From the NCBI RefSeq assembly GCF_902459465.1, contig NC_047080.1, forward strand, positions 5,270,001 to 5,334,000: 64,000 bases of DNA, given 5' to 3'. The translations under genes were made by a program, and so were the position numbers. The DNA is from Asterias rubens (taxonomy: Eukaryota). Positions 16,301-61,016 of this stretch are shown piece after piece; within the stretch, counting starts at the first letter, position 1; the number at the start of each line of letters is the position of its first letter. The notes below the pieces were generated by a model that worked only from the letters and a program-made list of their open reading frames with translations, made no database searches and was not told the origin of the DNA.

Positions 16301-19300
16301 AATAATTGTCATGACCAGGATTTGAACCCACACCCACCAACATAGCTTGTATACACCTGCAACCTAGGACCTCCTTGTCCCTCTTTTGCAACAGCTCCCG
16401 TTGGTTTTGTACACGTTTTCCAACTGTGGACCTTTCCCGAACCGTGGACCCTATTGCCCTCTTTTGTTATGGGTCCTCGGTTTGAATAAGTATACATGTA
16501 CCTACCCACCCAGAATTGAGTCTGACACACATTAATTGCTTTGCTCTAGAATGCATTACGATATGTGAGCAGACTATTTGATCTCATTGTCAAAACACGC
16601 ATTTGAAAAAAAACAAAAAAACTTTTATATGATTTTTTTCAACAACAAAAGACATTTGTGAATGATATCCCACTAGTAATCAGACAGATAGACAGTAATA
16701 ATCCCTGGATTGTAATTTACATAAAAACAGAAAAAGAAATGAGGAATGATTATAGAACGCATCATTGCAATCACAACAAAGTCAATGTTGAGCATTAGTC
16801 AAACAGATGCTGAATATTTTTAGTTCGTGCTTTCTCTAGTTATTTTTCTCCAGAAAGAGGACACAATTTCCTTTTTAACCATCTCTTCAAAAGATTTTCA
16901 AGAAAGTTTTCAAGAATACTTTCTCAGCGTCAGCAGTCTACTAATGTTATGATGTAAAAGTGATGTAAAAGAATTTGTTGTGACTTTATACATGTGTATA
17001 TTTAAAGACACTGGACACTATTGGTAATTGTCAAAGACCAGTCTTCTCACTTGGTGTATCTCAACATATGCATAAAATAACAAACATGTGAAAATCTGAG
17101 CTCAATTGGTCGTTGGAGTTGCGAGATAATAATGAAAGAAAAACCACCCTTGTTATACATAGTTGTGTGCTTTCAGATGCTTGATTTCGAGTCCTCAAAA
17201 TCTAATTCTGAGGTCTCGAAATAAAATTCGTGGAAAACTACGTTACTTCAGAGGGAGCCGTTTCTCACAATGATTTATACTATCAACAGCTCTCCATTAC
17301 CCGTTACCAAGTAAGGTTTTATGCTAATAATTATTTTGAGTAACTACCAATAGTGTGCACTGCCTTTAAACTGGATCAAAGATTCAAATTTGTCAGCTCA
17401 GCAATAATAAGGTTCTTAACTGCAATTTCATTATGAAAAATGTGTATACAATTGATAAATAACCCAAAATCCATATATAATTATAATAGTTTTTCTTGCT
17501 TTCATTAACCAAACAATTTCTTTTGAGATGACTCTTGATCAACAACCTAAATAAACCAGAAGCTCCAAAAAAAAGCAAAACCACTTTGATAAAATGCAAT
17601 AACAACCTGATAGTCCTGAGCCGACAAATTGAACAACAGAAAAAGTAAAGTTTGAATGAGAATTAAATTTTGACAAATAAAACAATGTAGACCATACACA
17701 CAGCTTGATTGGTCACAAACATCAAAATCATCAAAAACAATGCCATGAACCTGCACACAAAATGAATTGTTCAAATATTTAAATGAAGAGCATCTCATGC
17801 ATATGCAACGATTTTATGCAAAGTAGGCTTGTTCATGCATCATCAGCCATTGAGCATGGGTCATGAGATTGGACATTTTCAAACACAAAGGTAAAGGGCA
17901 AATTTAGGTGACAATGGGTACATTTTTAAAAATCCATTGCATATTCAAATAACGTCCCATGTTTTTTTAAAGAACTTTTGAACCAAGTATGAAGAATTCT
18001 GTAAAATGCACATTCAATTTTGCCACAAAATGTGGTTATTCACATACTATTAAAAACAGTGTTATCAGTTGAACTCTGTTAAAAAAATTGTTTAGTTGAT
18101 GGAAAAATTGTTTAGTTGTAATTTCAAAACACATTACACCAATCCGGATAGGCAGTATGCCCCGCCCATCAAGGTGGGTGGAGCATAAATGATTTAATTT
18201 TAGGCGCTTTTTATTGGTCAAGGAAGGTTGGAATTGGAAAGGTAACCTGCATTCTTAGCTAAAAAAATTAGTCCACAGTTTAGAGATTGGACTTCTTGAC
18301 AACTTTCACCTCACAAAGAATCAAGATTCTGAAAGGTTTCCTTGAAAATCTACAAAAGACATATATGTTTCAAACTACATTGTGTATTTGGAAATTTGAT
18401 AGTATTTTTCTTATTACTACAGCTACAGAAATTGAAGTAGATGTCAGCATACTGCTTGCATGAGAAATTCAAATGAGTGGGTGTGGTTGATTGACAGTAT
18501 AAACTGGGTGTGGTCTTTTGCCAAATCCGGATTGGTTCATTCTAAAAATAGGGGTTAAAAAACTGAATTGATATACATGTAGATCTGTTTGTACCTTTGG
18601 CCCATAAGCAATGAGCTTAAGAACAGCTTCAATAGTGAAGAGCACCGTAAAGGCGATGTTGAGGTAAGCTAGAACATTAACGTACTCATCAGATGCTTTA
18701 TATTGCTGGGTGATTCAAAAAATTGGGGGAGATGGAATCGGGGGGGGGGGGGGGGGGGGGGAAATGGTAGAGGAGGATAGAGGAGGTGTTTCAAAGAAGA
18801 GAAAAAAGAAAATAATACACATTTGGATGATAATGATTGACAACATGCATGGGAAACTGAAAAGAGTTCATGTGTTTCAATTCCAAATTTCTGTCTGATA
18901 AAGATGCTCATGTTGATTTTAAACTACTGATAAAAGTACAGCGGCAAAAGAGTTTGCGTTTCATACTTATTTGAATATATTTCAAAAGGTCTTTACTGTT
19001 CAGGAGATAAACAATTTGAAACTGAAAAACATCTTCTCTTTTGATTTTTCAAAAAACGAATGATAGCATGTATACGTCATGCTAAACAACAATGACAACA
19101 ACAACAACGATGACAACAACAACAACAATGCCAGAAACAACGACTGACAGAGGCACCAAAGGATATTATAGTAGACTTGTGGACAAGTCGATAAATGTCT
19201 GTCGCGGCAATAGCGTTCCCACTCTCTCTGCGATTCCCGCAACACTGGCGATTTTCTCGCAAGACTGCTGGCCCCTGCGAGCCTACTGCTCTTGTGCTGT

Positions 19301-22300
19301 GCAGTCTCATAATTGGGAAGTAGTAATCGGCAGCCGGCAGCTCCGCGCTAGGGCAGTGATCTCGCGAGAGAAGTATTCAATCGCAGAAACCTGAATCATT
19401 ACACCACCACACCATGACTTGCGACACAGACCATTTGTTAACGACTTGTCCACAAGACTAATACAATAGCTAAGATGGACGGTGGAAGAGCATAGCCCAG
19501 GAGGATGATGATGCTGCTGATGATTTTGGTGATTACACTCAGTAGAAGGTAGATCTTGCTGAGTATCTTACCCTTGGTCCAAACCCAATTAGCTTGAGGA
19601 TTGCTTCGATTGTGAAGAGGACTGTGAACGCTATGTTCAAATACTTCAAAGTGTCCGTGTAGGTAGCCTCAGCCTTATATGTCTGAGGATAGGGGGAGGC
19701 ACCGGGAGTGCCCATTGTTAGTCAAATTAGTAACTGGCTGTGTTCCGAATTGGCAGCTACATGCTACGGCTATGGCTAGATGTCCACCCCAACATGTGCT
19801 GAAGTATGGCACGCACTTAGCAATGACCGTAGCCGTAGATGTAGCCACTTATTCGGATACAGCTCTTGTTTTTTATGGAAAGGGTTAATCTACAATACAC
19901 TGATCCTGCAGTAGGCTGTAAGAGTGTTTCTTTATATGCAACTCGTGCAGAATATTGTCGCTGGATAATTGAGTAATTCGCGTCATGACGTCTGTGCTCA
20001 GCGGCTACAATTTGTTCATTCTTTGTAAATTGCTTGATTCCAATGTTCGACATGTGGAGGGGCTTAGTGATTAGCTTGTTCAATCAAAACCAACCAACCC
20101 CAGGTCATTAGAGTTTAGTGCTAGCATTTCAAAAGATTGATGTTTTGCAATAAATGGAACCTAATCGGTTCAAATCTCAAGAAAAAAAAGAAGAAAAAAA
20201 AAAAAATTCAATGTGTAATAAATGTTCGTAGTATGACTGGTACTCAGCCCTACACTAAAGGAACTGTGTCATCATGATCAACGCAGGTTTGTGGCTGTAC
20301 ATGGGATGATGAATTCTCATCCGGTTACAAGACGCACATGCGCTCTCCATAGATGCAACTTGGAGTTAGGGCGCCCTGGTGCTGTATCTGGCTGAGAGTT
20401 CATAATTCCATGTACATCAACAGGCTTTGGCTCAATTTCATAGAGCTGCTAAGCACAACAATTTGCTCAGCATGAAATTTCTTCCTTGATAAAAACAGGG
20501 TTACTAAACATTTCCATTTGTTGCATATTGCTTGTTACTCGTATTCAGCTGTCGTTTGCTTATCCTGAAAATCATGCAGAAGTTTGGTGTGCTTAGCAGA
20601 TGTGCTTAGCAGACCTATGACATTGGGCCCTGATTTGATTATGATGACACAACACCTTTAAGGATCAGTGTATTTCTAGCGATGCTGTCTTTATACAAAG
20701 CACTCAAATAGAATAAAGAATTGAATACAATAACAGGTGTCGTCATCGCTCATCTACCCCATTAGGAATCCTTGGTATCGCCATTCTCAAAATGGGCTCA
20801 AAAGGAACTTTTTTGTTGATTTTGATGCTATTTGAATGTCTCCTGATTGATTGAATGGTTTTTCTATTGGTGGACATATCAATGGCTTCAGCTCCTTAAG
20901 TGGTCCAAATTGATATTGATAGCTTATGTGAGCAGTGTTGTGTCTGATTGGCAACCATAACTTCGAGAAAATGAGTTGCAGCTTCAGAAAAGTGTCCAAA
21001 TTAGAATAGTTTAATTGAATTGTGAAGGGTTGATTCCAATTGTTACCAGAGAAGAACATTGGTTGCAATGCAAGTATCAAACTTGAAATAGTTCAATTGA
21101 GTTTTAAAGTAACAATTTTGGTTGGCAACCATACATGTAGCTAGCAGAAAATGAGTTATGTCAGAAAACTACTACCGGATACACATTGGAATAATTTAAG
21201 TGCATTTTGAAGGGTCGATTCTTATTGGTGTCTATAACTCCATGAAAATTGGTTGCAACATTAGACAAGTATCCCAAGTGTTATGAGTGATAACGACCCT
21301 GTGCATTGTTATAATTGCTAGACTACTCTATTATTCCATTCTTCATCATGGTTAACGCCATCTTGGTTGTTTCTCATTCAAGTCATTGTAAGGCCGTGCC
21401 GAAACGGCAACTTCGGCTAAAGCTGGGGCTAGATCGCGTTCGTCTGCCTATTCTTCAACACTGGCAGACGCGTTGATCTAGCCGTAGCTGTAGCCGAAGT
21501 CACGGTTTTGGACACAGCCTAACTGAGCTTGAGGTTGATGAGAAATTAGTCTGGCTACTTCTACTGTATTATAATGTAAGTATCAGTATTGAAGATTCGC
21601 TATAGAGATCATGGGTAGACAGGGAATATGTCATAAGGTTTATCGCGATTCAGAACCCCAATGCGTTGTGGGTAGGCGGTTGGGGCATTTGCGACCGCGC
21701 AGTATGTTGTCATGCCAACATGCGCACGCATGGCCAATATCTTTGTGTGGGTTCAACAGCACCCTCTCTTGATATTTTGCCATTTGCGATAAACCTTATG
21801 ATGGCGTTATCATGATGAAGGTTTGGACTACGGACTTCAATAACTCATCTAGCATCTCTGCCACAATATTAAGAAATAAAAAGCAGAAATTAAGACATGT
21901 CCGTCAGTTGAAGATATGTCCATTATGTCAAGTCCTGTTGGAGAGGGTTGAGGTGAGGGTGGGGTTAGGGTCAAGATCAGGGTCACAGTAATTTAACAGT
22001 TGGGAAGTAAAAGAAGGTCAGTCAATCAGATAATCAATAAGGTATTATTAGCTTGCATCGGAAAAAAACAAATTGCACTACGATCAATAATATGTGTAAA
22101 AAAACAAACCACAATCAATACTTTATCAATTATTGACTAAAAAATCCCCAATTAATAGTCTGTAAATAGTTGTCAGTCAATAATCGATTCAACAATGAAC
22201 AGCTTATCAATATTCAGTCAATAATCAGTTTAGCATAGAACAGCTATCAAACTATCAAACTATTGATCAATAGTCAATTCTTCAGTAGTCAAGTCAACAA

Positions 22301-37300: not shown

Positions 37301-40300
37301 CGATCGTATGGAAAATCCCATTACGGTGTGTTCAATACATAAGCCAGCCATTTCCGCCGTGCCTGATTACAAGTTCTATCTAACAATAGAGCCCATAAAT
37401 TATTTTCTGATGTCAGTTTGTGCTCCATTGAATTGGTTTTCTTTTTAAAATGAAAACAAGAGAATTATTTTCTTTGACTTTGAGTGCGTTGTAAAAGTGG
37501 AATGAATAACTAATTGCATGTTGTTGTATTTTTTTTTTTTCAAGAGCATCTTTGTTCAGAGGTAGAGTGGTTTTGGCTTTTGTTGAGCCATGAACAAGTA
37601 ATTCTTCTGTAATAAATTTTAATTATAAAATGATAATTAAATTGGTTATTGAGTTCAACTAAGCAATGCTGTTTTCAGATAAATGAATTTGTTTATGTTA
37701 ATGTGAATTAGAGTTTTGAATTTTGTGTTGAATTAAATCAATTTAAGACAGATTAAAACTGGTAAGTACGAGTATTATACATGTCATCAGGGATCACAGA
37801 TTCTAAATTAAATTTTCAAATGGCGAGTATTTTTTGCTGAAACTACATGATCTGAGGAAACATTATTTGTTGTACTAATTTTTCTTTTTCCTACCATTTC
37901 TTAGTATTTCCTTTAATTTGCTTAGGTTATTATTTGTATAAGCCTGGTTCTTGTGAGTCCTTTTAACCACAAATAAAATATCTACATAATTAGTAAATAT
38001 TAAATATACTTCTCTAAGCCTATTTCAATAAAAAATATAATGAATATTAACTTGAAGTTTTTCAACTTTCTACAGACGAGTAAAGATTTGATGAATTTGC
38101 AAAAAGTGGAAATGTATTAGGATAGTATTTTTTTTAAGCAAAGTGTACAAATGTAAAGATTCTTTGCATCGTGCGTATCGTGAATGAAACAACATGCCAT
38201 ACTCGAGTAAAATGTGAAATTTTGAAATCAGTATCGGCAATGAGATGAGATAATAATATAGAATTTCACAGTTGGTTGTTTTGTTTGGCAATGCACTGCA
38301 ACTTAAAACACTAGTGATACAAATAATACATCAATGCTTGGTGATGTCAAGAATTGAGTGCAGAAAATCGGCGGCAAATTTACCTTCCACCAAACAGCTG
38401 CATTCCAAGAAGAGCAAAGATGAGAATGAAGAGGAAGAGGAGGAACAGCAAACTGACAATGGAGCGCATACTACTCAGGAGGGATACCACCAGGTTTCTT
38501 AACGAGGACCAATATCTGGAGGGACGAAATCGGGTTGACGAGGGGGCGACGACGAGGTGGGGCAAGAGGGGCAAGAAATTGACACAGAAAGAGAGAATGA
38601 GGTAGGAAGAGGATTGGTGGAAGAGTTGAGAAAACATCAATTAGATGAGATGAGATTGGGTTTGAAGAAATGGAATGAAAGAAGTTTTAAGAGAACACAT
38701 CAATAAGACGAGATTGAAGACGATAAGGACATGAGATGGGAGGAATTTTAAGAATTGATGTAGAGGGTAGGAATTCAAGAAAGTAAAGAAGATTAAATAT
38801 CAGCGGAAGATTTTAAGAAAGGTGTAGAGAGTGGAAGGTTTGAGGGAGAAGAGAATAGGTAACAAGGTGGAGATGGGTTTGGATCAGTGGAGAAATGAAG
38901 GAAGAGTAGGCAAGGAGGAATGAATGATGTACACAGGACAATCGAGTAGGTACAAGATAATGATTTGAGGACGAGAGAAAAGAAAGGAGTGTGGAATGGG
39001 TGAGTTCAGGATACAAAGGGTGAGAAATGGGAGGGAAAAAAACAAAAAAACACAATTAACATTAGTGCTTTGTGCACCATGGTTTCTGTTGCCATGGTAT
39101 CGTAATTGATGCTGTTGTGGTTGACACTGTCTGACCATGAGGAAGCTGACACTCAGCAGACGAGGCACCTCAGGTGATGATGGTCACACTCTGCATCTTC
39201 AAGAAAATTAAACATGTCCTTGGAGGACGGAAGAAGAAGTCTGTGAATCGAGATGGGAGGTTTATCTTTATGTGAACATGCAAGCTGCAAATGTGTGTCA
39301 CAGTGTGACAGAGGATAAATATTGGGAAAAAGATACAAAACGTTAAGAAAAATAATTTTGAGTCGTGTAATGTCTTGAGAATTTTAGAAGGATTAAAAAT
39401 GATTGTGTTGAGATGAAAATGAACAGCTTTCTGAATAGAGAAAAATAAAGAAGAGATATTTTCAGTGAATTAGACTTCAAGGGAAGGTACAACAGTCCTG
39501 TCAACAAGGTTTTCATTACTTTTTTAATAGATTTTTGGAGATTAGAACAATTTAAATCAATTTCCCCTTGCAATCGTTTCTGCTACTTTCAAACATTTCA
39601 ATTTTTGTATGAGTTGTTTTTTTGTTTTACTTATTGTTAACTAAAGACTGTTGTACCTTCTCTTTTTCTAGAAACATGTTGCAATGCTGGACAGTCACTC
39701 AGCCACTGAAAATAAATAAAAAACACACAAGAATTTGGCAAAGTTGTGGAATCTCCAGAGCTTGGGAAACAAAATGTGAGATGAAAATGACATGAACATA
39801 TGAGAAAATCTGACGGTCCTAAACTGATTACCAGGAGGCTTACCTAACCTCCAAAGATCGAGTCTTATTTTCAACTGAGCTTCAAAGAACATATATCTTG
39901 TTGTCACCAATCACCTACAGTCCTAGACTATGAATCATATAGGGACAACCTATGGCCCTTTTTGAAACCATGGCCTCGGCTCCAGATTCGGCTCAGGCTA
40001 GCGGTTTGCTTTGACACTTGGGCATGCTTTGCGTACATGCTCTTGGGTCGATTTAACAAAGAGTTTGGACTAGCCCTAACTTAGGAGTAGTCCTTGGAGA
40101 TACTAAAAACATATGGCTTGTCCGAACTTAGGACGAGTAACTCATCCTAACTCGAGATAAGACTCGTCTTAACTCTTTGTGAAATCCACCCCAGGGCTTC
40201 TGAAGAGAAACGAAGCCTGAAGCCGAATCCAAAGCCAAAGCCATGGATTTGAAACGGACCTACATTATGTGGCTAGCCTTCGCGTTTTTCTACGGGTGTC

Positions 40301-43300
40301 TGCCATTCTGGCATACTTACGAACCCCCGAAGAGCTGCATGCCGAGTAAGGCAAAGATGACGATAAACAAGAAGAGCAAAAAGACAAGACTGACAATGGA
40401 GCGTATACTATGCATCAACGACATGATGAGGTAACGCAATGGAGACCAGTATCTGAGAATGAGGCAGCAGGAAGGAGATAAAAGAATAAACCAAGAGGGA
40501 GTTATGGAGCAACCTCTATCCCAAACTACAAGCTAGCGATGTGAATAATTAACCAGGGGAGGGATGCGGGGTTGGTGAAAGTTTGTTCCATGCTTTTGAC
40601 ATGAATGAAACTTGACTTTGCCAAAGGGGGTTGGTTTAGAATTGATATTGGGTGCATGATTTGAATCAGGGGATTTTGTTTTTAGCATACAATACTGTTT
40701 GGTATGTACAAGGTTTGAGACTTATCAAAACGTCCAACCCATAGGAAGTCATGCAAAATGAGATGTACAGTACGAGTCACATAGAGTTATATATAAGAAC
40801 TAGAGGGCGCACTGGTGATGCTTCTTGCACAAACGCGATGGGACCGCAAGGAGACTCGCATGCGCCATTCTGTACGCGCGTTGAATATGAAGTACACGTT
40901 GGAGTTTGTGTTTATTGAACGCTACGCGATGCTGTTTTGTCAAATTACAAAATGGGTGCACAAACGCACGCTGTGCGATGCCTGTTTTGTAAACTTAGAA
41001 AATGGCCGCCTACGCGCATGCCGAGTCGCGTAAATAGGCCAGTGCACCCTCTAGCTCTCATATATAACTCTATGATAAGTCATCAGTTGCAACTTGAACC
41101 AAAGTATTAGTAAAATAATCTATTTTTTTGTTGCAAATTGGCTTTTGATCACGAGCTTGAGAACCTAACACATATTACACATAATAGTATTTAGTTATAC
41201 CACTTAGCAAGACTGACATATCTGTAACAGCAGTTTGCAAAATAGATAAATTTCAAGATTTTCTCTAAATAATGAATTTGGTTCATTGTCCGACTGTATG
41301 ATGAATTGATCAGTTTGGATTTTGTGTAAAAAAACGGTTCAAATTCACCTAGAAAAAAAGGACTTTTTAAGCAATTTATTTGACTAAAATAATGTGATGG
41401 TGGGCGAGAGGTGGGGGGGGGGTGGTAGAACTAGCTCCTAAATGACATTAGCACACGTAGCTTCTACATTGTTTATATGAAAACTATTCTCCAACAAACG
41501 CCACCCTGGGGGGACATGTAAGCGATAAAAAAACAAACAGATTTTGTGTTAGTTTGAGGAAGAAATATTCTGCTAATGCAATGAATTATGAGTTGCTGTT
41601 TTGCAAAAAAAAAATTTCCCAAATGAGCGCGTGGGTGCTGAGATGATGAGTTACTGGAAAATAAACACAAATCTGAAGTTAGTACATTTTTAAAATAAAC
41701 ATTTCAATTAAAAGCACATGATAAGTAGCACTATCTGGGACTGTTGGATGATGTTGTCACGGACAATCGTAGATGCGGAGTCATGATCTCCAGGAATCAC
41801 TTCAGTAGAAAATTGTAATAAATACACAAATAATGAATAGTATTGTCCCAAATGTCAAAAGATTTACAAATTTCAAAGAATACTTTTTTCCACAATAGTT
41901 TGCCACAATCGATATACCTCCAATAGCTTTTACTGTCCACAACTTCTATGCTTCCTCATCGAGTAAGTTTGTATGGTTTTTGAGGAATGAACCAATCTCC
42001 TGAAAACAAACCCAGGGAAAAGGCCAGAAACCCATCAATCCCCAAACATCATATTTCCTCATGTAGAATTCTATAACCCTCTTTGTTGTTATAATAGAAA
42101 GACACTGAAAGTTACTAACCTTGTTACTTTGAATATTCTAAGAAGACGTAAAGCTCGGAGGACACTGAGACCAAAAGATCCACCTTGGAAATTGGTGTAG
42201 ACGACTTCAAACAAGCTGGCAAGAATAACCTGTAAGGTAAGATGGGTATTGTAAGATGTAGGTGTTTAGAGAGTAGACGATGGGAGGACGGAGTTAAAGA
42301 TTAGTTGAGGTTGGCCGTAGCACCATGTGAAAATCTTTTGAGAGGCTCTTTTGTTCTGAAAAGAAACAGTGGTTTACAACTCAATGTTTCGTTCAGTTTG
42401 CTCTGATGAGCATATTTAGGAGGATGCTAAAATCTTGATAATGTATTACAAGGTTAATTGGCTGATTGCTTGTTTGTTTGTTTGTTTAGATGATCTAGTT
42501 GTCAAGGGAACTCGGCAAACCCCCACAAGGGGATTAAAACGAACAGCCAATCTATCTCATACAAACATTTGGTTTAATGTCTTTGATTATAAATAGTACA
42601 AATCAAGAAATTGTGATTCAGTAACTAGACACGATACTTAGTTCGGTAGGATTCGAACCCAGTGGCATGCTGATGTGATTGATGTCATTTGAATACTCAC
42701 CAAGCAGTCAAACTTATTGAAGGCAGACTTGAAGTAGGTTTGAGGGCCAAGACCGTAAATCTTTATCGCCATCTCAGTGATGAAGATACCCAAGAAAACA
42801 TACTCCGCACGTGCTGTGAAAAAAAAATTAAAAATTGCTTAAGTTGCAGATTACACAGGACAGAACATCAATCTAATTGACCCATTGCATATGACTTCAC
42901 AGTCTTAAAAAGGAGACAGATCAATAGCTGTTCTCTGTGCGTAAAAACGTGCGCATGACCTCAGCGAACCTTTGCTTAGCATGAAATTTCTTCCTCGATA
43001 AAAACAGGATTACCAACAAAATTTACATTTGTTGACTATTGCTTGGTACTTGTATTCAGCTGTTGCTTGACTATCCTGAAAATCACGTGGAAATTTGGTT
43101 GAGAAATCCTGTTTTTATCGAGGCAAAATTTCATGCTAAACAAATTTTTCTGCTTAGCAGCTCTATGAAATTGAGCCCTGTTTGGAGGATCAAGCTAGCA
43201 GCTAGAATTTGTTCAGGGCAGACAATCTATATTAGCACCCAAGGTATTGGAAGTTGATGAACTTGTTTCCTGAGGTGAAGCTTAGGGAACTAAGTTTGTC

Positions 43301-55300: not shown

Positions 55301-58300
55301 TAGTGTCCAGTGCCTTTAAAACCATCAAAACAGAACAACCAAGTTTAAAAAAAAAGACCTATGTCAGGCCTGAGATTACACGGTGGGGACTGGCCTCTGA
55401 TCTTTCAATGGAAGCGCATTTTGCAAAACGAGAATTGCCTTGCCCAAAGAGGCCAATCCGGAGGCAACGTGTCCGTTAAATACCACAAGTTCCAAACTGG
55501 TACCCAGTCATGTGTACCAACCATGCACCTACTTCAGAGGGAGCCGTTTCTCACAATGTTTTTTACTATAAACAGCTTTCCATTGCTCATTACCAACTTA
55601 TTTTTTATGCTAACAATTTATTTGAGTAATTATCAATAGAATCCAGTGCCAATTTTAAAATCATAGAATTTCGAGAAATCCTATTTCCTGGATTTTCACC
55701 AACAATGTATCCTTGATGCACTATAAGAAAATCTAAAAGCAAAAATATTTAAGAAATACAACAATTTACGCTGAAATCTGTGCAAGACTTACCTGTGCTT
55801 TTGCCGTTTTCATCGGCAATAAAGCATGTATTGTGGAATTTACCCTGGAAGAATTCCATGCCAGTGATGGCAAAGATGATAATGACAAATAAAATGAGGA
55901 GACCAATTTGAAGGAGGGGAGCCATGGCTTTAAGGATAGCTTTAAGGACAACTTGCAAACCTGAAAAGAAAGAAGACAATTAATAATCACTGCCCAGAAG
56001 ATTCGTGTTTACATGATGAAAGTTTCAGGTTTGTTTTTATTAGAGCTTATTGATGAAACATTCTGTAGACACAAATAGTTGTTTACAGAACAAACAATAC
56101 TTTTAAAAAATGTTCTAACGTAAAAGTGAAAACCCATTTGTAAAAATGTCAAACCTTGAGCTTTGGATTGGTTCAGAATAGTTTTGAAAATGAAATGAAT
56201 TAAGTTTATACAATAAATATATTGCTATATAATTTCTGGTTGAAATCCCGCTTTAGTAGTGTCGTGTTTTGTTCACCCCCAAATATTTAAAGTTTACCCA
56301 GTGGGCCATAGATCCCCCTGTGGTTAATTACTTGAAAATAATCACATTTTAACACGGAATTATTACGTACAAAATTAGTGATTAAAGTTTTAACCATTGA
56401 GAACAAAAATAGTTAAAAGTGTTAATTATATAAATTTTCCTTTTTCCATTTATATACAAAACAATGTGCTTCTCCTGGTGCTTGCTTCATCACGTCGTTA
56501 TGGTTACTGCAAGTCACAACTTACTTGGGATGCCTGATACTAATTTCAGGGGTCGAAGTACTCTGATTGCACGAAGGGTTCGCAGATCTGGGGCCGAACT
56601 GCTTCCCTCTGTAGTCTCTGCTAGACCTCCTATGAATGATATAAATCTGCAGCGACACCAAGAGGAGTTGGGGAGGGGGGAGACAAAGGAGGGGGTGATT
56701 AGTTTGGAGGTCCATGGCTGGGAAACAGATTGTTATGTTACTTGTTTGTGTTGTTTGTTTTGAAACGTAAAACAAAAAGGAATTCATGCAAGATATCTGC
56801 ACTTGTCAACATTTAAAGTTAGTTTGTTTAGTCTGTACTTAATTTACCAAAATATGTAAATAGAGGTTTAAAAAGGTATTGTGTGTCATAGTTTTTTCTG
56901 TCAAAGTTTGATTGATTGATTGATTGGTACTTGTTAGTTGGTCTTCTGAAACTTCCATGGGGAAATTGACAAGTAGGTCAGGAATGTCAGCTGAATACAG
57001 AGTTTACTTATACTTAGCCTTTAGTCAAGGCGCATGCGGCACACCGGATAGCACGCACAGCCCCAAAAATGTAACGCACGAAAAAAGACTAACACTGCGA
57101 GCAGCGAAGCGCCTTTACCAACTCGTTTTGGGGGCCTTATGTTTTTCTTTACATTTGCCAACGATTTTGGTGGGAGAAAATGTAATGCATAATGCATTAG
57201 CGTGGTGAGTTGCTGGCCAATAAGAAGCCACAATTACTTGCATGACGTCACAAGAACGTTTGATGCAAATTCGTTACATTTTCTCCCACCAAAATCGTTG
57301 GCAAATGTAAAGAAAAACATAAGGCCCCCAAAACGAGTTGGTAAAGGCGCTTCGCGGCTCCGCCGCTCGCGGTGATAGTCTTTTTTCGTGCGTTACATTT
57401 TTGGGGTTGTGCGTGCCATCAGGTGTGCTGCGTGCGCCTTGACTAAAGGCTAACTTGTACTGGGAAAACAGCCCAAAACTGTTACAGTATTTTCACAAGA
57501 TAGACCAATCCATTCCTATTTAGCGTTTAGCGTTTTAGAAAAGCGGGTCAGCATCTCTGGCCGTAGCATTCACGAGCAGACACTGACCCCTGAATGAAAC
57601 CGAGAAAAGATTCATGCATGAATAGTTTCTCAGGTTCAAGTGTTCTTATGGATTTCTAATCAACAGCTGAGCATTTCAGACGAAATAGTTATTAAGGTAT
57701 AGCAATTAAAGCAATCGCACAACATTGGTAAACAGTATTGTCCAAAGGCCCACACTTCGTGTATCACAACTTACATAAAATAACAAAATCTGTGAAAATT
57801 TAGGCTCAATCGATCATCGGAGTTGGGAGAAAATAATGGGAAACCCACCCTTGTTTCCGCATGTTTCGCCGTGTCATGACATGTGTTTAAAATAAATCTG
57901 TTATTCTCAATTTCGAGAATTGATTTAATTGTTGTTTTCTAAAAAAATAAAGCATTATTTCAAGGGAAGTCTTCCACCATCACCTTCTGTAAACCCTGTA
58001 AGTTATTTGTAAATCTGTGAACTTTTAATTTTTGTTCTGTTCAGAAAATGTCCAATGGCTTTAAGGTGTTTTGGTAAAAAAAAATAATGATCACAAAGTT
58101 GATACATCGTTAAAACAATTTGACAGTTTTACACAAAAGTTATGATACCCGGTACAACATTTTAAGAATTTAACAGTTTTTGGTTTTACTAGTCGAAAAA
58201 CAACAATACAACTAAAGACGATAAACACACAATAAAGACACTAACTGACAACAACTTCAATGTACCTAAGAAACAGTGTCATAGTTGCTATAATTATAAC

Positions 58301-61016
58301 CCTCCATTCTCTCTGACTGTCGGGAGGATGGAGGGTTACAATTATCACAACTAGGTTAGATTTGTAAACACTGTTGTTGTATTAATTGAATGAGTACAGT
58401 TAGAATATCCATAATAATTTTCCATCAAAAAAAGACTTACTTGGGAAACCCGAGACTAACTTAAGAGGTCTTAAGACCCGAACTGCTCTAAAAGCAGGTT
58501 GATCAAAAGATGGTATGAGAATGCTCAAGGTACTGATCAATGATGAGATGAAATTACAAAGTGACGAAGCGTGAAGGCAGGGCAGGCAAAGAAAAGACGG
58601 GAAAAGCCACAGAGGGAAACGACATAAATTAGCAACAAGAAAAACCATGGTAGGGTAAAATGAAATAGCTCAGTATTTCTTGCTTTAAATTGATTGATTT
58701 TATCAGCCAATATCTTTGCATTATTGTCCTATTTTGAAACAAAGTCGTACAGTGACTCATCATCATTATTCATAACCTGCATATTTAATAAAATATTATT
58801 AGGCCTATTAATGTTATAATAAAATTTAAAAAAAATAAAAAATCTTCTCTGAACGAATGCATACATTTTAACCACTATGAAACACCTTGGTTGGGCTGTT
58901 AATGGCTCTTTTTTAACAAAAAGACTGGTGATGTAAAATTTTAACGCCACAGACATAAGGAAACACATGCAATAGTTTGGGACTCAGGCTTGTAACGTTA
59001 CTCCTAGTCCTAGATTCCCTAGAACCTTGACTCAGATGAGGTTCGTGCCGCTATCGCCTCCGGGATCAGACGATAGCGGAACTAACCTCATATCAAACTA
59101 AGAACATGGGGAGCACACGTAAGCTTTGATTCTTTTTAGTGAGGCAGTATCACAAAGTACAAAAGTGTATTTTTTTATTCCTCCAATGGTAGCTTTACTG
59201 CATTATTTGGAACATGTGTATATATTATTGCCTGTTTTACAACGTGGAAAAGTTTCCGTATGGCGCCACCACTTTTTCATTCGAAATAAAATAATATAGT
59301 ATCTAATTTACCTGATTGATATATCCCTTTTTGTAAAAATGAGTGAAAAAGTGGTGGCGCCATACGGAAAGTTATCCTACAACGTTAGTGTGGAAACAAT
59401 CAACCTACTATAACACTAAAGTCTAAACTAGTAAACCTAAACCTTACTACTGTCCTGCTTAAAAGGACAGTGAACACTGTCAATGATGTCATGTCAGTCA
59501 GTGTAACTGTAAAATTCAAAAGCCCATAAAAAAGGCATAAGCAACACTGAACATGCTGAAATTGTGAGATCCACCCATTTTAGGCTATTTCTACCTCCAT
59601 CCATGCACAAACTAGTTACCTTACCTAGTTACGATAACGTTGCGATAACCCTCCTGCCGACTAGTTGCGATATATAACGTAAACCTCCTGCCGACGGGGC
59701 GGAGCCTCCGGTTTCGCCGTCACCGGAGGCTCCGCCGTCGGCAGGAGGTTTACGTTATCGCAACTAAACCCTACCCTCAATTATATAGCTCACTAAGGAT
59801 AACTTTCCGTATGGCGCCACCACTTTTTCACTCATTTTTACAAAAAGGGATATATCAATCAGGTAAATTAGATACTATATTATTTTATTTCGAATGAAAA
59901 AGTGGTGGCGCCATACGGAAACTTTTCCCTCACTAAACCCAGTAACTGGGGCGATGTACTCCTTTTTTCGAAATTTTGACATTCTCATAATGTCAAAATT
60001 TCGAGAACAAAAAGGAGTACAGCGCCCAAGTTACTTGGTCTTTAGCTCACCAAACCTGATTTTGTAGAAATTGCATCCCAAACATCTTTGATCCTTCGTC
60101 AAGTTATATGCTCAGAAGAGAGTAATTTTGTGGCTTTTGCGTACATTATTCTTGTGGGAAAACTCACAGAATGACACTGTCGTTCCCCATGTAAACACAG
60201 TGCACTGTACACGTGAGTTTTGTGTACAAGTCGAGTTGGTCGTTAGAGGGTAAGAAATCGTGGGTCGAGTAGGTCATGAAGCTGATCGATCGAGACGATT
60301 AAGGCCGAGTTGGCAAATAAGCTCTACCACTTGTTGATGGGGGGAGAGGGGGAGGGGTCATTTATAAATATGATAGCAAACTCAACGAATCAAAACAAAA
60401 ACCGGACGAACCCAAAAACACAAACATGTGTTTCTTTTAAGTTGTCCTTTAAAAGAATTAATCGCACAATTACGAAAAATGTACATCACTGAGTCGACAT
60501 ACACTGTCACCCTGTTCAAAAATGGTTTGATCCGTTGGGCTTCGTGTGTTTTCATTAAAAGTTTTGTGCGGGTCAATAAACTTTGAAAAGGATTTTGTCA
60601 ATGTCGGCTCGCAAAACCCCAGTTAATTTCAAATAAGAAATCAAACTCAAAAACCCAAACCAAAGAAAGTTCGTACAATTACAAAGAGAGAAACAAAACA
60701 TACAAAAGGCCTAAGTTGTTAATAACAAAAGTAAGTCCCCTTTTATTGCACAGGATGAAGTGTTGCTATCTAAGAAAGTGCAGTCATTTTATGTAATTAA
60801 TTTCTTAAAGGTGCTACCACTACCTTCCTTGTTTTAGAACAAAAAGGTCAAAGGTCATAAATAATCAAAGACTTACCCTGTAACTACAACTACGAAGTCC
60901 ATTAAATTCCAGCCGTTTCTGAGATACGAGCCTTCATGTAGTACTAAACCTAATGCGGTTATTTTGATCGTCGCTTCGAGGCAGAAAATGGCGAGGAAGT
61001 AGATCTCTGTTTTTTC
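1276..61016 (-). CDS. Cav2: Multi-exon Cav2-type voltage-gated calcium channel alpha-1 subunit gene (partial; 5' and 3' ends outside window)
   Basis: About 40 GT-AG exons join in frame. Pore motifs are [22 protein letters not shown] and ATGESW (EEEE), and the AID is [32 protein letters not shown] and [12 protein letters not shown] are Cav2-type rather than Cav1-type. Confidence 0.97.
1801..1890. repeat. (TG)n plus poly-G / GGGGGTGA low-complexity tract
   Basis: Direct inspection. Confidence 0.95.
2760..2869 (-). CDS. Cav2: Cav2 exon 40 (IQ motif), 110 nt
   Basis: ctcag|AG TTG ATT...AGA ACG|gtaagc; [36 protein letters not shown]. Confidence 0.95.
3757..3830. repeat. Minisatellite, 22-bp unit TAATCTAGATTAGATAATCAGA x~3
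   Basis: Direct tandem copies. Confidence 0.88.
3848..4024. mobile_element. TTA-flanked MITE (PIF/Harbinger-like)
   Basis: TTA|AGGCCGAGTCACACTGCAGC...GCTGCAGTGTGACTCTGCCT|TTA. Confidence 0.78.
4070..4174 (-). CDS. Cav2: Cav2 exon 39 (pre-IQ), 105 nt
   Basis: ctcag|TG GCC GAT...GAC AGC G|gtagga; [34 protein letters not shown]. Confidence 0.95.
4621..4726 (-). CDS. Cav2: Cav2 exon 38 (pre-IQ), 106 nt
   Basis: gacag|CGT CTA...GGC AAA G|gtgaga; [35 protein letters not shown]. Confidence 0.96.
5136..5232 (-). CDS. Cav2: Cav2 exon 37 (EF-hand), 97 nt, single copy
   Basis: ttcag|T GGA CGA...TAC AAG|gtaaga; [32 protein letters not shown]. Confidence 0.96.
5731..5803 (-). mobile_element. tRNA-like SINE head (Asn-GTT-like); degenerate copy ~6840-6975
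   Basis: GGGCTACATAGCTCAGTTGGTAGAGC...GGTTCGAATCCC; acceptor stem does not pair; flanks shared with a second copy. Confidence 0.65.
6148..6524. mobile_element. About 380-bp non-autonomous DNA transposon (MITE), TTAA-flanked, Kolobok-like
   Basis: TIR AGGCACTGGACAC...GTGTCCAGTGCCT with TTAA on the left. Further copies at 17006-17365, 44753-45130, 45139-45496, 54937-55315 and 61284-61661 (mostly TTAA on both sides); partials near 8715-9070, 33977-34200 and 55525-55655. The superfamily call is inferred from the TTAA target and RR termini. Confidence 0.85.
6595..6722 (-). CDS. Cav2: Cav2 exon 36 (IVS6 end and EF-hand start), 128 nt
   Basis: tgtag|ATG TTG AAT...GGA AC|gtaagt; [42 protein letters not shown]. 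Confidence 0.96.
7300..7468 (-). CDS. Cav2: Cav2 exon 35 (domain IV filter and IVS6 start), 169 nt
   Basis: cacag|G TGT GCT ACC GGA GAG...TTC CTT|gtaagt; [14 protein letters not shown]...[20 protein letters not shown]. Confidence 0.96.
9350..9650 (-). mobile_element. tRNA-derived SINE
   Basis: Minus-strand head GGCATGGTTGGC...GGTTCGATTCCCGGCC followed by a CCGGTTTTCCTCCC SINE-core-like motif. Confidence 0.6.
10901..10992 (-). CDS. Cav2: Cav2 exon 34b (domain IV turret and P1 helix), 92 nt, divergent copy
   Basis: cgcag|ATT TTT GGT...TTC AG|gtaaaa; [30 protein letters not shown]; phase 0 to 2. Confidence 0.9.
11555..11649 (-). CDS. Cav2: Cav2 exon 34a (domain IV turret and P1 helix), 95 nt
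   Basis: ttcag|ATC TTC GGC...TTC AG|gtagac; [31 protein letters not shown]; phase 0 to 2. Confidence 0.93.
11945..12150 (+). mobile_element. tRNA-derived SINE family (copies also ~3441-3590, 24440-24850, 34555-34775, 54340-54545)
   Basis: A-box/B-box-like head (GGTAGTCTAGTTGG...GGTTCGAATCCC) followed by a shared body; five dispersed copies. Confidence 0.78.
12321..12510. mobile_element. GGGCCCAATTTCATAGAGCTGC-terminated MITE family (also ~20428-20630, 42960-43180, 48426-48592, 52205-52385)
   Basis: Shared termini and internal GCTAAGCA motifs in five dispersed copies. Confidence 0.7.
12551..12660. repeat. Minisatellite, 20-bp unit GGGCCCAAAGAGCCCAAGTT x~5
   Basis: Direct tandem copies. Confidence 0.92.
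12725..12790 (-). CDS. Cav2: Cav2 exon 33 (IVS5), 66 nt
   Basis: tacag|TCG CTG CCT...ATG CAG|gtaggt; [22 protein letters not shown]. Confidence 0.96.
13307..13423 (-). CDS. Cav2: Cav2 exon 32 (IVS4), 117 nt
   Basis: gtcag|GAT GGC TTC...TTC AAG|gtgaga; [39 protein letters not shown]. Confidence 0.96.
13502..13727. mobile_element. MITE-like element with terminal inverted repeats
   Basis: AATAGACCCTTCCCATGAA...TTCATGGGAAGGGTCCATT. Other unrelated TIR elements at ~19172-19460, 21390-21522, 21631-21801, 39950-40262 and 40781-41073. Confidence 0.75.
14413..14418 (-). CDS. Cav2: 6-nt microexon (Pro-Asp) in the IVS3-S4 linker
   Basis: ttgttgtttttgtctctgatttttccctcttgtag|CCTGAT|gtaagtat; phase 0 to 0; same position and size as vertebrate Cav2.1 NP and Cav2.2 ET microexons. 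Confidence 0.78.
15541..15624 (-). CDS. Cav2: Cav2 exon 31 (IVS3), 84 nt
   Basis: tatag|AAC TAC TTC...GTC GGG|gtaagt; [28 protein letters not shown]. Confidence 0.96.
17006..17365. mobile_element. TTAA MITE family copy (opposite orientation)
   Basis: Reverse-complement match to the 6148-6524 element; TTAA on both sides. Confidence 0.88.
18595..18705 (-). CDS. Cav2: Cav2 exon 30b (IVS1-S2 loop and IVS2), 111 nt
   Basis: cccag|CAA TAT AAA...CCA AAG|gtacaa; [37 protein letters not shown]. Confidence 0.92.
19572..19682 (-). CDS. Cav2: Cav2 exon 30a (IVS1-S2 loop and IVS2), 111 nt
   Basis: ctcag|ACA TAT AAG...CCA AGG|gtaaga; [37 protein letters not shown]. Confidence 0.93.
22422..22586 (-). CDS. 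Cav2: Cav2 exon 29 (III-IV linker and IVS1), 165 nt
   Basis: tgcag|AAA CAA TGT...ATG AAG|gtattt; [55 protein letters not shown]. Confidence 0.96.
22650..23200. mobile_element. GGACTAGTCC-rich palindromic MITE family (also ~40045-40195, 54223-54340)
   Basis: Repeated TTAGGACTAGTCCTA units and GGGGTGGATTT(C/T)ACAAAG-like termini. Confidence 0.7.
23289..23490 (-). CDS. Cav2: Cav2 exon 28 (IIIS6), 202 nt
   Basis: tgcag|C GTC CTA...AAT CAG|gtttgt; ...[43 protein letters not shown]. Confidence 0.96.
24004..24144 (-). CDS. Cav2: Cav2 exon 27 (domain III P-loop), 141 nt
   Basis: tacag|A GGT AAC...TGG CCA GA|gtaagt; ...[23 protein letters not shown]. Confidence 0.96.
24515..24779. mobile_element. 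TA-flanked MITE nested in a SINE (Tc1/mariner-like)
   Basis: TA|ACACCCGTTTCAGACAGGTGC...GCACCTGTCTGGAACGAGTGT|TA; the SINE sequence resumes on the other side. Confidence 0.78.
24868..25028 (-). CDS. Cav2: Cav2 exon 26 (IIIS5), 161 nt
   Basis: tgaag|GCG GTG TTC...GAA TGC AA|gtaagc; [53 protein letters not shown]. Confidence 0.96.
25758..25869 (-). CDS. Cav2: Cav2 exon (IIIS4), 112 nt
   Basis: ttcag|A GCC GGC...CTC AAA|gtaagt; [37 protein letters not shown]. Confidence 0.96.
26620..26795 (-). CDS. Cav2: Cav2 exon (IIIS2-S3), 176 nt
   Basis: tgtag|GTG TTG GAA...CAA GCA TC|gtaagt; [58 protein letters not shown]. Confidence 0.96.
27628..27766 (-). CDS. Cav2: Cav2 exon (IIIS1), 139 nt
   Basis: tacag|G ATT CGA...AAC GCG|gtaagt; [46 protein letters not shown]. 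Confidence 0.96.
28059..28275. repeat. About 95-bp-arm inverted repeat of a Penelope-like terminal fragment (related fragments ~9725-9870, 26350-26510, 42325-42420)
   Basis: 28059-28152 pairs with 28180-28275; contains the ACGTTTCGATCAG...CTGATCGTCTTC motif. Confidence 0.7.
28843..28918 (-). CDS. Cav2: Distal II-III linker exon D, 76 nt
   Basis: tgtag|AA GGA GAA...ACC AAC CC|gtaagt; [25 protein letters not shown] matches the conserved pre-IIIS1 motif. Confidence 0.94.
29711..29905 (-). CDS. Cav2: II-III linker exon C, Trp/Cys-rich, 195 nt if the GC donor is used (internal GT donor at 29802)
   Basis: 217-nt AG-free zone; accag|AC GTC CAA...GAA GAA G|gcaaga; open frame ending NNNEEE joins exon D ([10 protein letters not shown]) in phase 1. 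Confidence 0.62.
30935..30963 (-). CDS. Cav2: Candidate II-III linker microexon B, 29 nt (TPPPYPPLS)
   Basis: About 100-nt AG-free pyrimidine tract with CCTAAT/CTCAC branch-like sites; gtcag|A ACC CCA CCT CCG TAC CCA CCA TTG TCC T|gtacgt; phase 2 to 1. Confidence 0.55.
32169..32248 (-). CDS. Cav2: II-III linker exon A, 80 nt
   Basis: atacag|A GAG GGT...GAC CCA G|gtaggt; [26 protein letters not shown]; phase 2 to 1; about 90-nt AG-free zone upstream. Confidence 0.75.
32254..32332. repeat. (AATAATC)n heptamer array abutting the exon A acceptor
   Basis: About 11 tandem units. Confidence 0.92.
32696..32864 (-). CDS. Cav2: Cav2 exon 17/18 (IIS6 end and proximal II-III linker), 169 nt
   Basis: ttaag|AC ACC CTA...GAA GCA AT|gtaagt; [56 protein letters not shown]. 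Confidence 0.95.
32865..33709 (-). other. U12-type (minor spliceosome) GT-AG intron
   Basis: 5' splice site GTATCCTTT (33701-33709); branch site TTCCTTAAC (32884-32892) about 18 nt from the AG, with no real polypyrimidine tract. Confidence 0.92.
33275..33640 (-). mobile_element. tRNA-derived SINE with Deu-domain-like core (other copies ~26830-27450, interrupted, and ~53625-53905)
   Basis: tRNA-like head GTGTCGTGGCCGAG...GGTTCGAAATCCC; core GTAAAAGAACCCAGTGCACTTATCGAAAAGAGAAAGGGTTCGCCCCAGTGTTCCTGG resembles the DeuSINE domain as I recall it; (TTA)n tail in other copies. Confidence 0.72.
33710..33827 (-). CDS. Cav2: Cav2 exon 16 (domain II P-loop and IIS6 start), 118 nt
   Basis: ttcag|ATT CTG ACT GGT GAA GAT TGG...GGC AAC T|gtatcctttt; [39 protein letters not shown]. 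Confidence 0.96.
34804..34882 (-). CDS. Cav2: Cav2 exon 15 (domain II turret), 79 nt
   Basis: cccaag|C TTC AAC...TTT CAG|gtaaaa; [26 protein letters not shown]. Confidence 0.94.
35036..35350. repeat. Tandem repeat, ~105-bp unit x3
   Basis: GTATTGGTTGATTGATGACAAAAATAGTCTGGTTC recurs at ~35141 and ~35246, with a degenerate first copy. Confidence 0.9.
38384..38515 (-). CDS. Cav2: Cav2 exon 14b (IIS4-S5 linker and IIS5), 132 nt, canonical-type copy
   Basis: tccag|A TAT TGG...GGT GGA AG|gtaaat; [43 protein letters not shown]; phase 2 to 2. Confidence 0.94.
40321..40452 (-). CDS. Cav2: Cav2 exon 14a (IIS4-S5 linker and IIS5), 132 nt, divergent copy
   Basis: ctcag|A TAC TGG...GGG GGT TC|gtaagt; [43 protein letters not shown]; phase 2 to 2. 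Confidence 0.92.
42120..42229 (-). CDS. Cav2: Cav2 exon 13 (IIS3-S4), 110 nt
   Basis: tacag|GTT ATT...GTA ACA AG|gttagt; [36 protein letters not shown]. Confidence 0.95.
42701..42813 (-). CDS. Cav2: Cav2 exon 12 (IIS2), 113 nt
   Basis: cacag|CA CGT GCG...TGC TTG|gtgagt; [37 protein letters not shown]. Confidence 0.95.
43915..44103 (-). CDS. Cav2: Cav2 exon 11 (IIS1), 189 nt
   Basis: accag|AG AAA TCC...TTT CTT A|gtaagt; ...[47 protein letters not shown]. Confidence 0.93.
44753..45496. mobile_element. Two tandem copies of the TTAA MITE family
   Basis: Two consecutive ~370-bp units, each beginning AGGCAGTGGACAC. Confidence 0.88.
45853..46140. repeat. G-rich degenerate duplication (two ~150-170-bp units)
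   Basis: ATAATGG(A/G)TGGTGTGGGGGTTAGGATTAGGGGA occurs twice. Confidence 0.8.
49176..49274 (-). CDS. Cav2: Cav2 exon 10-equivalent (I-II linker), 99 nt
   Basis: Long U/C tract then cctag|CT CGT CGG...GAT ATA G|gtatgg; [33 protein letters not shown]; phase 1 to 1 fits both neighbours. Confidence 0.8.
53171..53343 (-). CDS. Cav2: Cav2 exon 8/9 (I-II linker with AID), 173 nt
   Basis: atacag|A GAG TTT...ATA GAA G|gtaagt; [46 protein letters not shown]. Confidence 0.96.
54043..54146 (-). CDS. Cav2: Cav2 exon 7 (IS6), 104 nt
   Basis: tttacag|TGT AGT...TTG AGT GG|gtaagt; [35 protein letters not shown]. Confidence 0.96.
54571..54767 (-). CDS. Cav2: Cav2 exon 6 (domain I turret and P-loop), 197 nt
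   Basis: atcag|GT GTA ATG...TAT TAT|gtaagt; ...[30 protein letters not shown]. Confidence 0.96.
54937..55315. mobile_element. TTAA MITE family copy
   Basis: TTAA|AGGCACTGGACAC...GTGTCCAGTGCCT|TTAA. Confidence 0.9.
55793..55960 (-). CDS. Cav2: Cav2 exon 5 (IS5), 168 nt
   Basis: ttcag|GT TTG CAA...AGC ACA G|gtaagt; [46 protein letters not shown]. Confidence 0.96.
56525..56646 (-). CDS. Cav2: Cav2 exon 4b (IS3-S4 linker and IS4), 122 nt, canonical-type copy
   Basis: ctgcag|A TTT ATA...ATC CCA A|gtaagt; [40 protein letters not shown]; phase 2 to 1. Confidence 0.94.
57014..57453. mobile_element. Long foldback MITE, ~170-bp inverted arms
   Basis: 57014-57184 is a near reverse complement of 57274-57453. 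Confidence 0.85.
57710..58060. mobile_element. Second TTAA-flanked MITE family (another copy at ~62265-62630)
   Basis: The two ~350-bp copies are closely similar; TTAA flanks; degenerate TIRs. Confidence 0.8.
58441..58532 (-). CDS. Cav2: Cav2 exon 4a (IS3-S4 linker and IS4), 92 nt, alternative copy
   Basis: gatcag|T ACC TTG...TTC CCA A|gtaagt; [30 protein letters not shown]; phase 2 to 1. Confidence 0.88.
59246..59928. repeat. Pair of identical 133-bp mini-MITEs in inverted orientation (59246-59378 and 59796-59928)
   Basis: Read base by base, the two are exact reverse complements; each has its own TIR (TTTCCGTATGGCGCCACCACTTTTTCA). Confidence 0.9.
60877..61016 (-). CDS. Cav2: Cav2 exon 3-equivalent (IS2-IS3), 140 nt
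   Basis: acag|GAA AAA ACA...GTT ACA GG|gtaagt; [47 protein letters not shown]. Confidence 0.96.

Follow-up and report, generated by a model that had tools for sequence, protein, structure and literature searches.

The vertebrate Nav1 genes contain a mutually exclusive exon pair, 5N and 5A, for the S3-S4 region of domain I of a four-domain channel. In invertebrates a single Cav2 gene serves all fast synapses, and mutually exclusive Cav2 exons for segment S4 of domain I (IS4) are already known from Drosophila. In the Drosophila Cav2 gene cacophony, exon 5 (IS4A) is located upstream and exon 6 (IS4B) downstream (PMC11828482; PMC12370356). IS4B is the dominant and essential form, is high-voltage-activated and is found at active zones (PMC11828482; PMC12370356). 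Here we describe two tandem versions of exon 4, termed 4a and 4b, in the Cav2 alpha-1 gene of Asterias rubens. The stretch of DNA that was analysed (the window) comprises 64,000 nucleotides of contig NC_047080.1 (positions 5,270,001 to 5,334,000), and the gene is encoded on its minus strand. According to our reading, 4a and 4b are homologous and mutually exclusive versions of Cav2 exon 4, with 4b as the default and 4a as an ancient, maintained alternative that would alter voltage-sensing domain I (VSD I); we put the probability of this reading at about 0.75.

The pair is located between exons 3 and 5, and the region is composed as follows:

60877..61016, minus strand: Cav2 exon 3 (IS2-IS3), 140 nt; ends with ACAGG/gtaagt and thereby with two bases of a Gly codon; defined by the contig joint 56646/60877 and by translation.
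58441..58532, minus strand: exon 4a, 92 nt; codes for the end of IS3, a short S3-S4 loop, IS4 with Pro at the position of the outermost Arg, and the start of the S4-S5 linker.
56647..58440, minus strand: intron between 4a and 4b, 1,794 nt; contains a hairpin resembling a miniature inverted-repeat transposable element (MITE) and a very high-copy repeat.
56525..56646, minus strand: exon 4b, 122 nt; codes for a canonical IS4 and an acidic S3-S4 loop that is 10 residues longer.
55791..55960, minus strand: exon 5 (S4-S5 linker, IS5), 170 nt; starts with GT CTA CAA and completes the Ser codon; defined by the joint 55958(+2)/56523(+2) and by translation.

Exons 4a and 4b are tandem homologous exons with equal phases, and each possesses its own AG/GT splice sites: 4a is bordered by the acceptor ttgatcag/T and the donor CCAA/gtaagt, 4b by the acceptor cgctgcag/A and the donor CCAA/gtaagt. 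The first base of each exon completes a Gly codon, and the last one opens a Ser codon. Translation of the possible joins showed that the frame is preserved in 3-4a-5 and 3-4b-5. When both exons are included (3-4a-4b-5), a stop is reached six codons into 4b, and when both are skipped (3-5), after five codons. Since both exons have a length of 3n+2 nucleotides, the inclusion of both or of neither results in a premature stop, which makes the two versions exclusive at the protein level. The frame is kept upon single inclusion only and thereby enforces a choice between 4a and 4b. An earlier inspection of this DNA that had only the letters at hand (the sequence-only reading) had noted the 3n+2 lengths and the frameshift upon double inclusion; both points were confirmed, and the stop in 4b can now be placed.

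Inverted-repeat scans for competing RNA structures with docking and selector sites yielded transposon-like hairpins and one weak pair of 21 nt (56740-56760/60409-60429, 81%). The MITE-like hairpin in the intron between 4a and 4b is located at 57014-57453 and has arms that are 91-97% complementary; the very high-copy repeat in the same intron covers about 57700-58060, and its contigs in RNA-type runs have depths of 10^5. A perfect inverted repeat of 133 nt is present in the intron that separates exon 3 from 4a (59246-59378 with 59796-59928).

The two exons encode different versions of the voltage sensor. Alignment of 4a to IS4 of human Cav2.2 and Cav2.1 with HMMER is free of gaps and places Q-P-A-F over L-R-T-L, and the Pro of 4a thereby occupies the position of the outermost arginine of IS4 (R192 in human Cav2.1). 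This residue is named R1 in one report (PMC9864995) and is R/K0 under the numbering of another (PMC6380215). 4b matches the canonical IS4 sequence of Cav2.1, Cav2.2 and Cav2.3. S4 contains three Arg and one Lys in 4a and four Arg and one Lys in 4b, and the S3-S4 loop of 4b has 10 extra residues compared to 4a, three of which are acidic. The sequence-only reading had given the same numbers of basic residues (five in 4b, four in 4a) and the same longer acidic linker, which agree base for base with our results, and it was likewise correct about the Pro at the R1 position, which the gap-free alignment bears out, and about SGFPS in 4a versus SGIPS in 4b. In a survey of approximately 380 full-length Cav2 proteins, which represent 71 distinct IS3-S4 segments, Arg (rarely Lys) was found at the outermost position; the exceptions are the 4a-type exons and the canonical exon of the feather star Antedon, which has Asn. 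The vertebrate IS3-S4 segments are all 31 residues long, which, judged by these protein lengths only, corresponds to the coding capacity of a 92-nt exon with these phases.

The choice between the two exons replaces the S3-S4 loop and the S4 of voltage sensor I in their entirety. Inclusion of 4a would provide VSD I with a minimal S3-S4 loop of vertebrate length and with an S4 that starts at proline and carries one charge fewer. In AlphaFold2 models of the 4a and 4b isoforms of the sea urchin Lytechinus, S4 of the 4a isoform begins at the Pro and the S3-S4 turn is tight; in the 4b isoform the loop is disordered (predicted local distance difference test score, pLDDT, <50) and the S4 helix starts one residue ahead of the arginine. 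The models have a pLDDT of 75-79 overall and of 53-70 around the loop and S4 and were used for the start of the helix, not for gating.

Splicing within the S3-S4 region has also been reported for other channels and sites. The pair 5N/5A of Nav1 resembles 4a/4b in being mutually exclusive and in affecting S3-S4 of domain I; it belongs to another gene family, its exons differ in one to three residues, and in contrast to 4a all S4 charges are kept. Length and splicing of the S3-S4 loop are reported to tune the voltage dependence or the kinetics of Cav channels (PMC4886277; PMC6161609), and exon 29 of Cav1.1 (IVS3-S4) and e24a/e31a of Cav2 are like 4a/4b in that splicing alters the loop length of one voltage sensor. 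Those variants insert cassettes into domains III and IV and do not affect S4, whereas 4a/4b exchanges the whole domain I S4 exon.

In mammalian Cav2.2, the movement of VSD I follows the opening of the pore both in voltage and in time, and G-beta-gamma inhibits this voltage sensor the most (PMC11389781). For this reason a 4a channel is expected to differ from a 4b channel; the difference would concern activation voltage or kinetics as well as G-protein modulation. Guidance on its direction might come from R192Q in human Cav2.1 (CACNA1A), the familial hemiplegic migraine 1 mutation. By alignment it removes the same outermost IS4 charge as 4a, but it is a pathogenic point mutation to Gln that leaves the loop unchanged, whereas 4a occurs naturally as an exon, has Pro at this position together with about 10 other changes, and encodes a loop shorter than that of 4b. 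The sequence-only reading had stated that R192Q shifts activation in the negative direction; such a hyperpolarising shift upon neutralisation of the outermost IS4 charge is found in human embryonic kidney (HEK) cells and is not found in oocytes (PMC9864995). R192Q also reduces G-protein inhibition (PMC9864995; PMC6096772). In Cav1.1, a conservative Arg-to-Lys exchange at the neighbouring IS4 charge moves the half-activation voltage (V1/2) by about 12 mV (PMC6380215). By analogy, the likeliest direction for 4a would be a lower threshold together with weaker inhibition, a prediction that we make tentatively and rate at slightly below even odds. The 4a form is probably a minority form that is limited to some cells or stages.

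The gene that contains the pair was identified by several features. The window holds most of the Cav2 alpha-1 gene, which extends here from about 61 kb (IS2) to about 2.8 kb (IQ region). Minus-strand open frames include the pore-loop exons with ITMEGW, LTGEDW, STGEGW and ATGESW, which represent the EEEE filter of the four domains, and the I-II linker exon encodes an alpha-interaction domain (AID) of the Cav2 type. Among PDB structures, human Cav2.3, Cav2.2 and Cav2.1 match best and rank above Cav1. The window is 92.7% identical over 1,340 aligned residues to an Asterias rubens isoform annotated as "calcium channel type A subunit alpha-1-like", and the peptide encoded by 4b is identical to the corresponding one in RefSeq isoforms of Asterias rubens. 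Homologues of the gene carry PF00520, PF16905 and PF08763. Genome-wide, exactly one 4a-like exon was counted.

Exons of the 4a type are present in other animals. Three of them were located in genomic DNA:

Apostichopus japonicus (sea cucumber), L002:6536-6627 (MRZV01000366.1): 4a type, 92 nt, AG/GT borders, first of four exon-4 copies.
Littorina saxatilis (gastropod), L003:16779-16870 (CM074573.1): 4a type, 92 nt, AG/GT borders, upstream of the canonical exon.
Schistosoma margrebowiei, L004:14358-14449: Pro-type exon, 92 nt, sole exon 4 of this Cav2 paralogue.

Among echinoderms, a 4a type of 31 residues also occurs as an annotated alternative in isoform X7 of the sea urchin Lytechinus variegatus (XP_041481260.1) and in isoform X5 of the feather star Antedon mediterranea (XP_071948425.1), both RefSeq models that were taken as annotated; the remaining listed isoforms of the two species are of the 4b type. 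In Apostichopus, the interval between exons 3 and 5 (L002:6536-8059) contains the 4a type followed by three canonical copies of 116, 104 and 107 nt. All four copies have AG/GT borders and a length of 3n+2, only copy 2 is annotated, and the three canonical copies differ from each other solely in the S3-S4 loop. The 4a exons of Asterias and Apostichopus have 23 of 30 residues in common; identity amounts to 85% at codon positions 1 and 2 and to 17% at position 3, with a nonsynonymous divergence (dN) of 0.16 and a saturated synonymous divergence (dS). Conservation of the first two codon positions together with divergence of the third is the signature of long purifying selection on 4a. The comparison shows 4a to be a real, maintained coding exon and an ancient alternative retained by purifying selection.

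The canonical (4b-type) exon of Antedon (isoforms P0151-P0164) reads FDFNTLRAV, with Asn at the position of the outermost arginine. With Pro in its 4a type, both Antedon versions are devoid of the outermost charge. In Anneissia, also a crinoid, the sequence is FDLRTLRAV.

Outside the echinoderms, the flatworm and Littorina gene models of the 4a type were found with a fragment search; a search of full-length proteins with the Antedon 4a segment gave no further 4a carriers, and its matches were dominated by vertebrate Cav2. In Littorina, the order is exon 3, the 92-nt 4a type, a canonical exon of 104 nt and exon 5, with phases identical to those in Asterias. Cestode (Dibothriocephalus) and schistosome gene models join an LLAYILPNLNQPA(L/V)-type segment to exon 5. 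Since the Pro type is the only exon 4 of the Schistosoma margrebowiei paralogue, the arginine-less IS4 is constitutive there. In the Littorina annotation, Cav2 is divided into separate models of 133 aa and 1925 aa. The shorter, first model runs from the 4a-type exon into the intron, where it ends; this break in the annotation is apparently caused by the alternative exon.

The 4a types have a length of exactly 92 nt, a (D/N)(Q/V)P motif in the same register and a G(F/I)ES or GFPS ending in common, and in three genomes of two superphyla (Asterias, Apostichopus and Littorina) the 4a type is located upstream of the canonical exon. Length, motif register, ending and upstream position, common to two superphyla, argue for one origin before the protostome-deuterostome split. 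In an exon tree calculated from all 29 alignable columns, the seven 4a-type exons are found on one side of a branch with support of 98/95. Common ancestry of a 4a/4b pair that predates the split appears rather probable from these sequence comparisons. A more detailed scenario, in which the protostome-deuterostome ancestor possessed a Cav2 VSD I switch, vertebrates and Patiria among others lost 4a, a flatworm paralogue kept only 4a, and echinoderms and at least one gastropod still splice both, has in our estimate marginally better than even odds. If it is true, an arginine-less VSD I would be a normal Cav2 state, half a billion years old, at the residue affected in human hemiplegic migraine.

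Several observations weigh against the reading of 4a as an ancient, maintained alternative, the first of them from transcripts. Expression data were Logan contigs from four RNA-type runs, and such contigs drop rare forms. The joints 3-4b (56646/60877) and 4b-5 are present in RNA-type contigs of three runs (two species labels), and 4b is the default, canonical form in Asterias. The sequence-only reading had suggested junction reads as a check and had counted the lack of 4a junction reads against itself; while the 3-4b-5 joints were found in three runs, neither a 3-4a nor a 4a-5 joint was present in the Logan contigs of the four runs, which is weak negative evidence because these contigs drop rare variants. 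The sole coverage of 4a is a contig of low depth (3.4, one run), which extends into the upstream intron and thus is unspliced. An index search detected no 4a words in three RNA-type runs, including those that carry the 3-4b-5 transcript. All 16 listed RefSeq isoforms of Asterias rubens and A. amurensis use 4b and none uses 4a. Inclusion of 4a in Asterias transcripts is accordingly putative.

Further points on the same side come from comparison and from the tree. In the starfish Patiria miniata, the gap-free intron between exon 3 and the canonical exon 4 (L001:17230-20909) contains no 4a-type exon, which shows that the exon can be lost and has been lost in this lineage of starfish. The exon phylogeny, proposed earlier as a check, recovered the 4a group with 29 columns, but not after removal of the three motif columns: with the remaining 26 the group is lost, yet not rejected (log-likelihood difference, lnL, -3.2; approximately unbiased test, p-AU 0.098). 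The alignment is too short and is informative only with the motif columns, and the exon tree was consequently not used as independent proof. In addition, the functional effect of 4a is one that we infer, and the effects of R192Q vary between expression systems.

The closest described system, cacophony, raises the question of whether IS4A/IS4B and 4a/4b are the same ancestral pair. The pairs belong to the same gene family, affect the same exon, which reaches from the end of IS3 to the first residues of the S4-S5 linker, and have the same phases; in both, the variant exon is located upstream and the canonical one downstream, and the canonical form of the fly is the dominant, synaptic one. Different phases of the fly exons, as a figure of 99 bp (eLife) would imply, were ruled out by the 35-residue peptides (PMC12370356) and by the lengths of the shrimp exons:

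Halocaridina rubra (shrimp), L005:13256-13362: IS4A type, 107 nt, DLRMLRSFR..VSRLPS.
Halocaridina rubra (shrimp), L005:15223-15323: IS4B type, 101 nt.

The shrimp possesses both types, which dates the fly pair at least to the pancrustacean ancestor. The distribution of the two variants differs: the fly type is pancrustacean, and carriers of the 4a type are echinoderms, a gastropod and flatworms. The differences between the variants themselves are considerable. Both fly exons keep the outermost arginine, whereas 4a has Pro and a minimal loop; IS4A gains one positive charge (VSRIPS), whereas 4a has one fewer (QPAFRAVR, VSGFPS). Therefore the analogy to the fly drawn by the sequence-only reading holds for the presence of paired IS4 exons in Cav2 and does not hold for the direction of the charge change, IS4A being the more positive form.

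If the pairs were one, IS4A would be the 4a orthologue that kept or regained the arginine. The upstream position of both variants and the identical intron phases (PMC12370356) are in line with this possibility, as is RS[ILF]R, which the Lytechinus and Littorina 4a types share with IS4A, and after removal of the motif columns a union of 4a and IS4A was not rejected (p-AU 0.31, 26 columns). However, IS4A keeps DLR, is 34-35 residues long, has no QP motif and carries the added charge of VSR[IL]PS; this signature (DLRMLRSFR, VSR[IL]PS, extra charge) is not found in exon 4a. With all columns, the exon tree places IS4A within the canonical exons of arthropods (support 99/93). We consider a common origin of the two pairs possible but doubtful.

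Besides an ancestral bilaterian switch that vertebrates have lost, the sequence-only reading had named convergence as an option. In that case, echinoderms, molluscs and flatworms would have acquired their Pro-for-Arg exons by independent duplications of exon 4, and the pair would not be ancestral. Exon 4 does duplicate readily, as the three extra canonical copies in Apostichopus and the separate IS4A type in Pancrustacea show, and the 26-column tree did not recover the 4a group. For hemichordates, amphioxus, sea urchins and brittle stars, whose state was taken from annotated isoforms alone, the listed isoforms of hemichordates, amphioxus X8, S. purpuratus, Diadema and Amphiura contain no 4a type. 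Convergence must however account for exons of exactly 92 nt that have the (D/N)(Q/V)P[AF] register, the ending and the upstream position in common across two superphyla. Moreover, the 4a-type exons of Antedon and flatworms agree in 22 of 31 residues, and the test cited above did not reject uniting the 4a types. An ancestral switch fits better, with the 92-nt exon upstream in Asterias, Apostichopus and Littorina and present in flatworm Cav2, and we regard convergence as quite improbable.

That 4a is an unused relic in Asterias, intact but ignored by the spliceosome and heading to a Patiria-like loss, is highly improbable: the lack of 4a joints in four runs and of 4a words in three, its absence from the 16 listed isoforms and from Patiria, and an acceptor tract less rich in pyrimidines than that of 4b (fraction 0.71 versus 0.80) would fit, but open frame, AG acceptor and GTAAGT donor are all intact, Logan contigs drop rare isoforms, and an unconstrained copy would not have retained so many residues in common with the sea cucumber exon while third positions became saturated.

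Literature searches found no description of the arginine-less 4a type or of its cross-phylum distribution. A survey of Cav2 splice sites in Aplysia reported five sites, and the 4a/4b site is not among them (PMC5818475). The 4a type is already contained in databases in the form of two RefSeq isoforms, Lytechinus X7 and Antedon X5. The 4a/4b pair would extend the recently described IS4A/IS4B switch of the fly to further phyla and with different chemistry. With a conserved exon that eliminates the outermost charge of IS4 and comes with a shorter loop, one gene would give rise to two kinds of presynaptic calcium channels. In 4a, the R192Q mutation of human migraine has a counterpart in evolution.

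Additional exons of the same Cav2 gene are present in two versions in the window. Two homologous exons for the IIS4-S5 linker and IIS5 (38383-38640 and 40320-40532, minus strand) are a further candidate for a mutually exclusive pair. The IVS1-S2/IVS2 exon is likewise found in two versions (18472-18714 and 19542-19721, minus strand). A mutually exclusive IVS2 pair has been reported for Cav2 of Aplysia, Crassostrea and Octopus (PMC5818475), and for this reason the pair in the window is probably also old. The exon that precedes the pore loop of domain IV occurs in two versions as well (10900-11169 and 11554-11664, minus strand), and the isoforms of Antedon likewise have two versions at this position.

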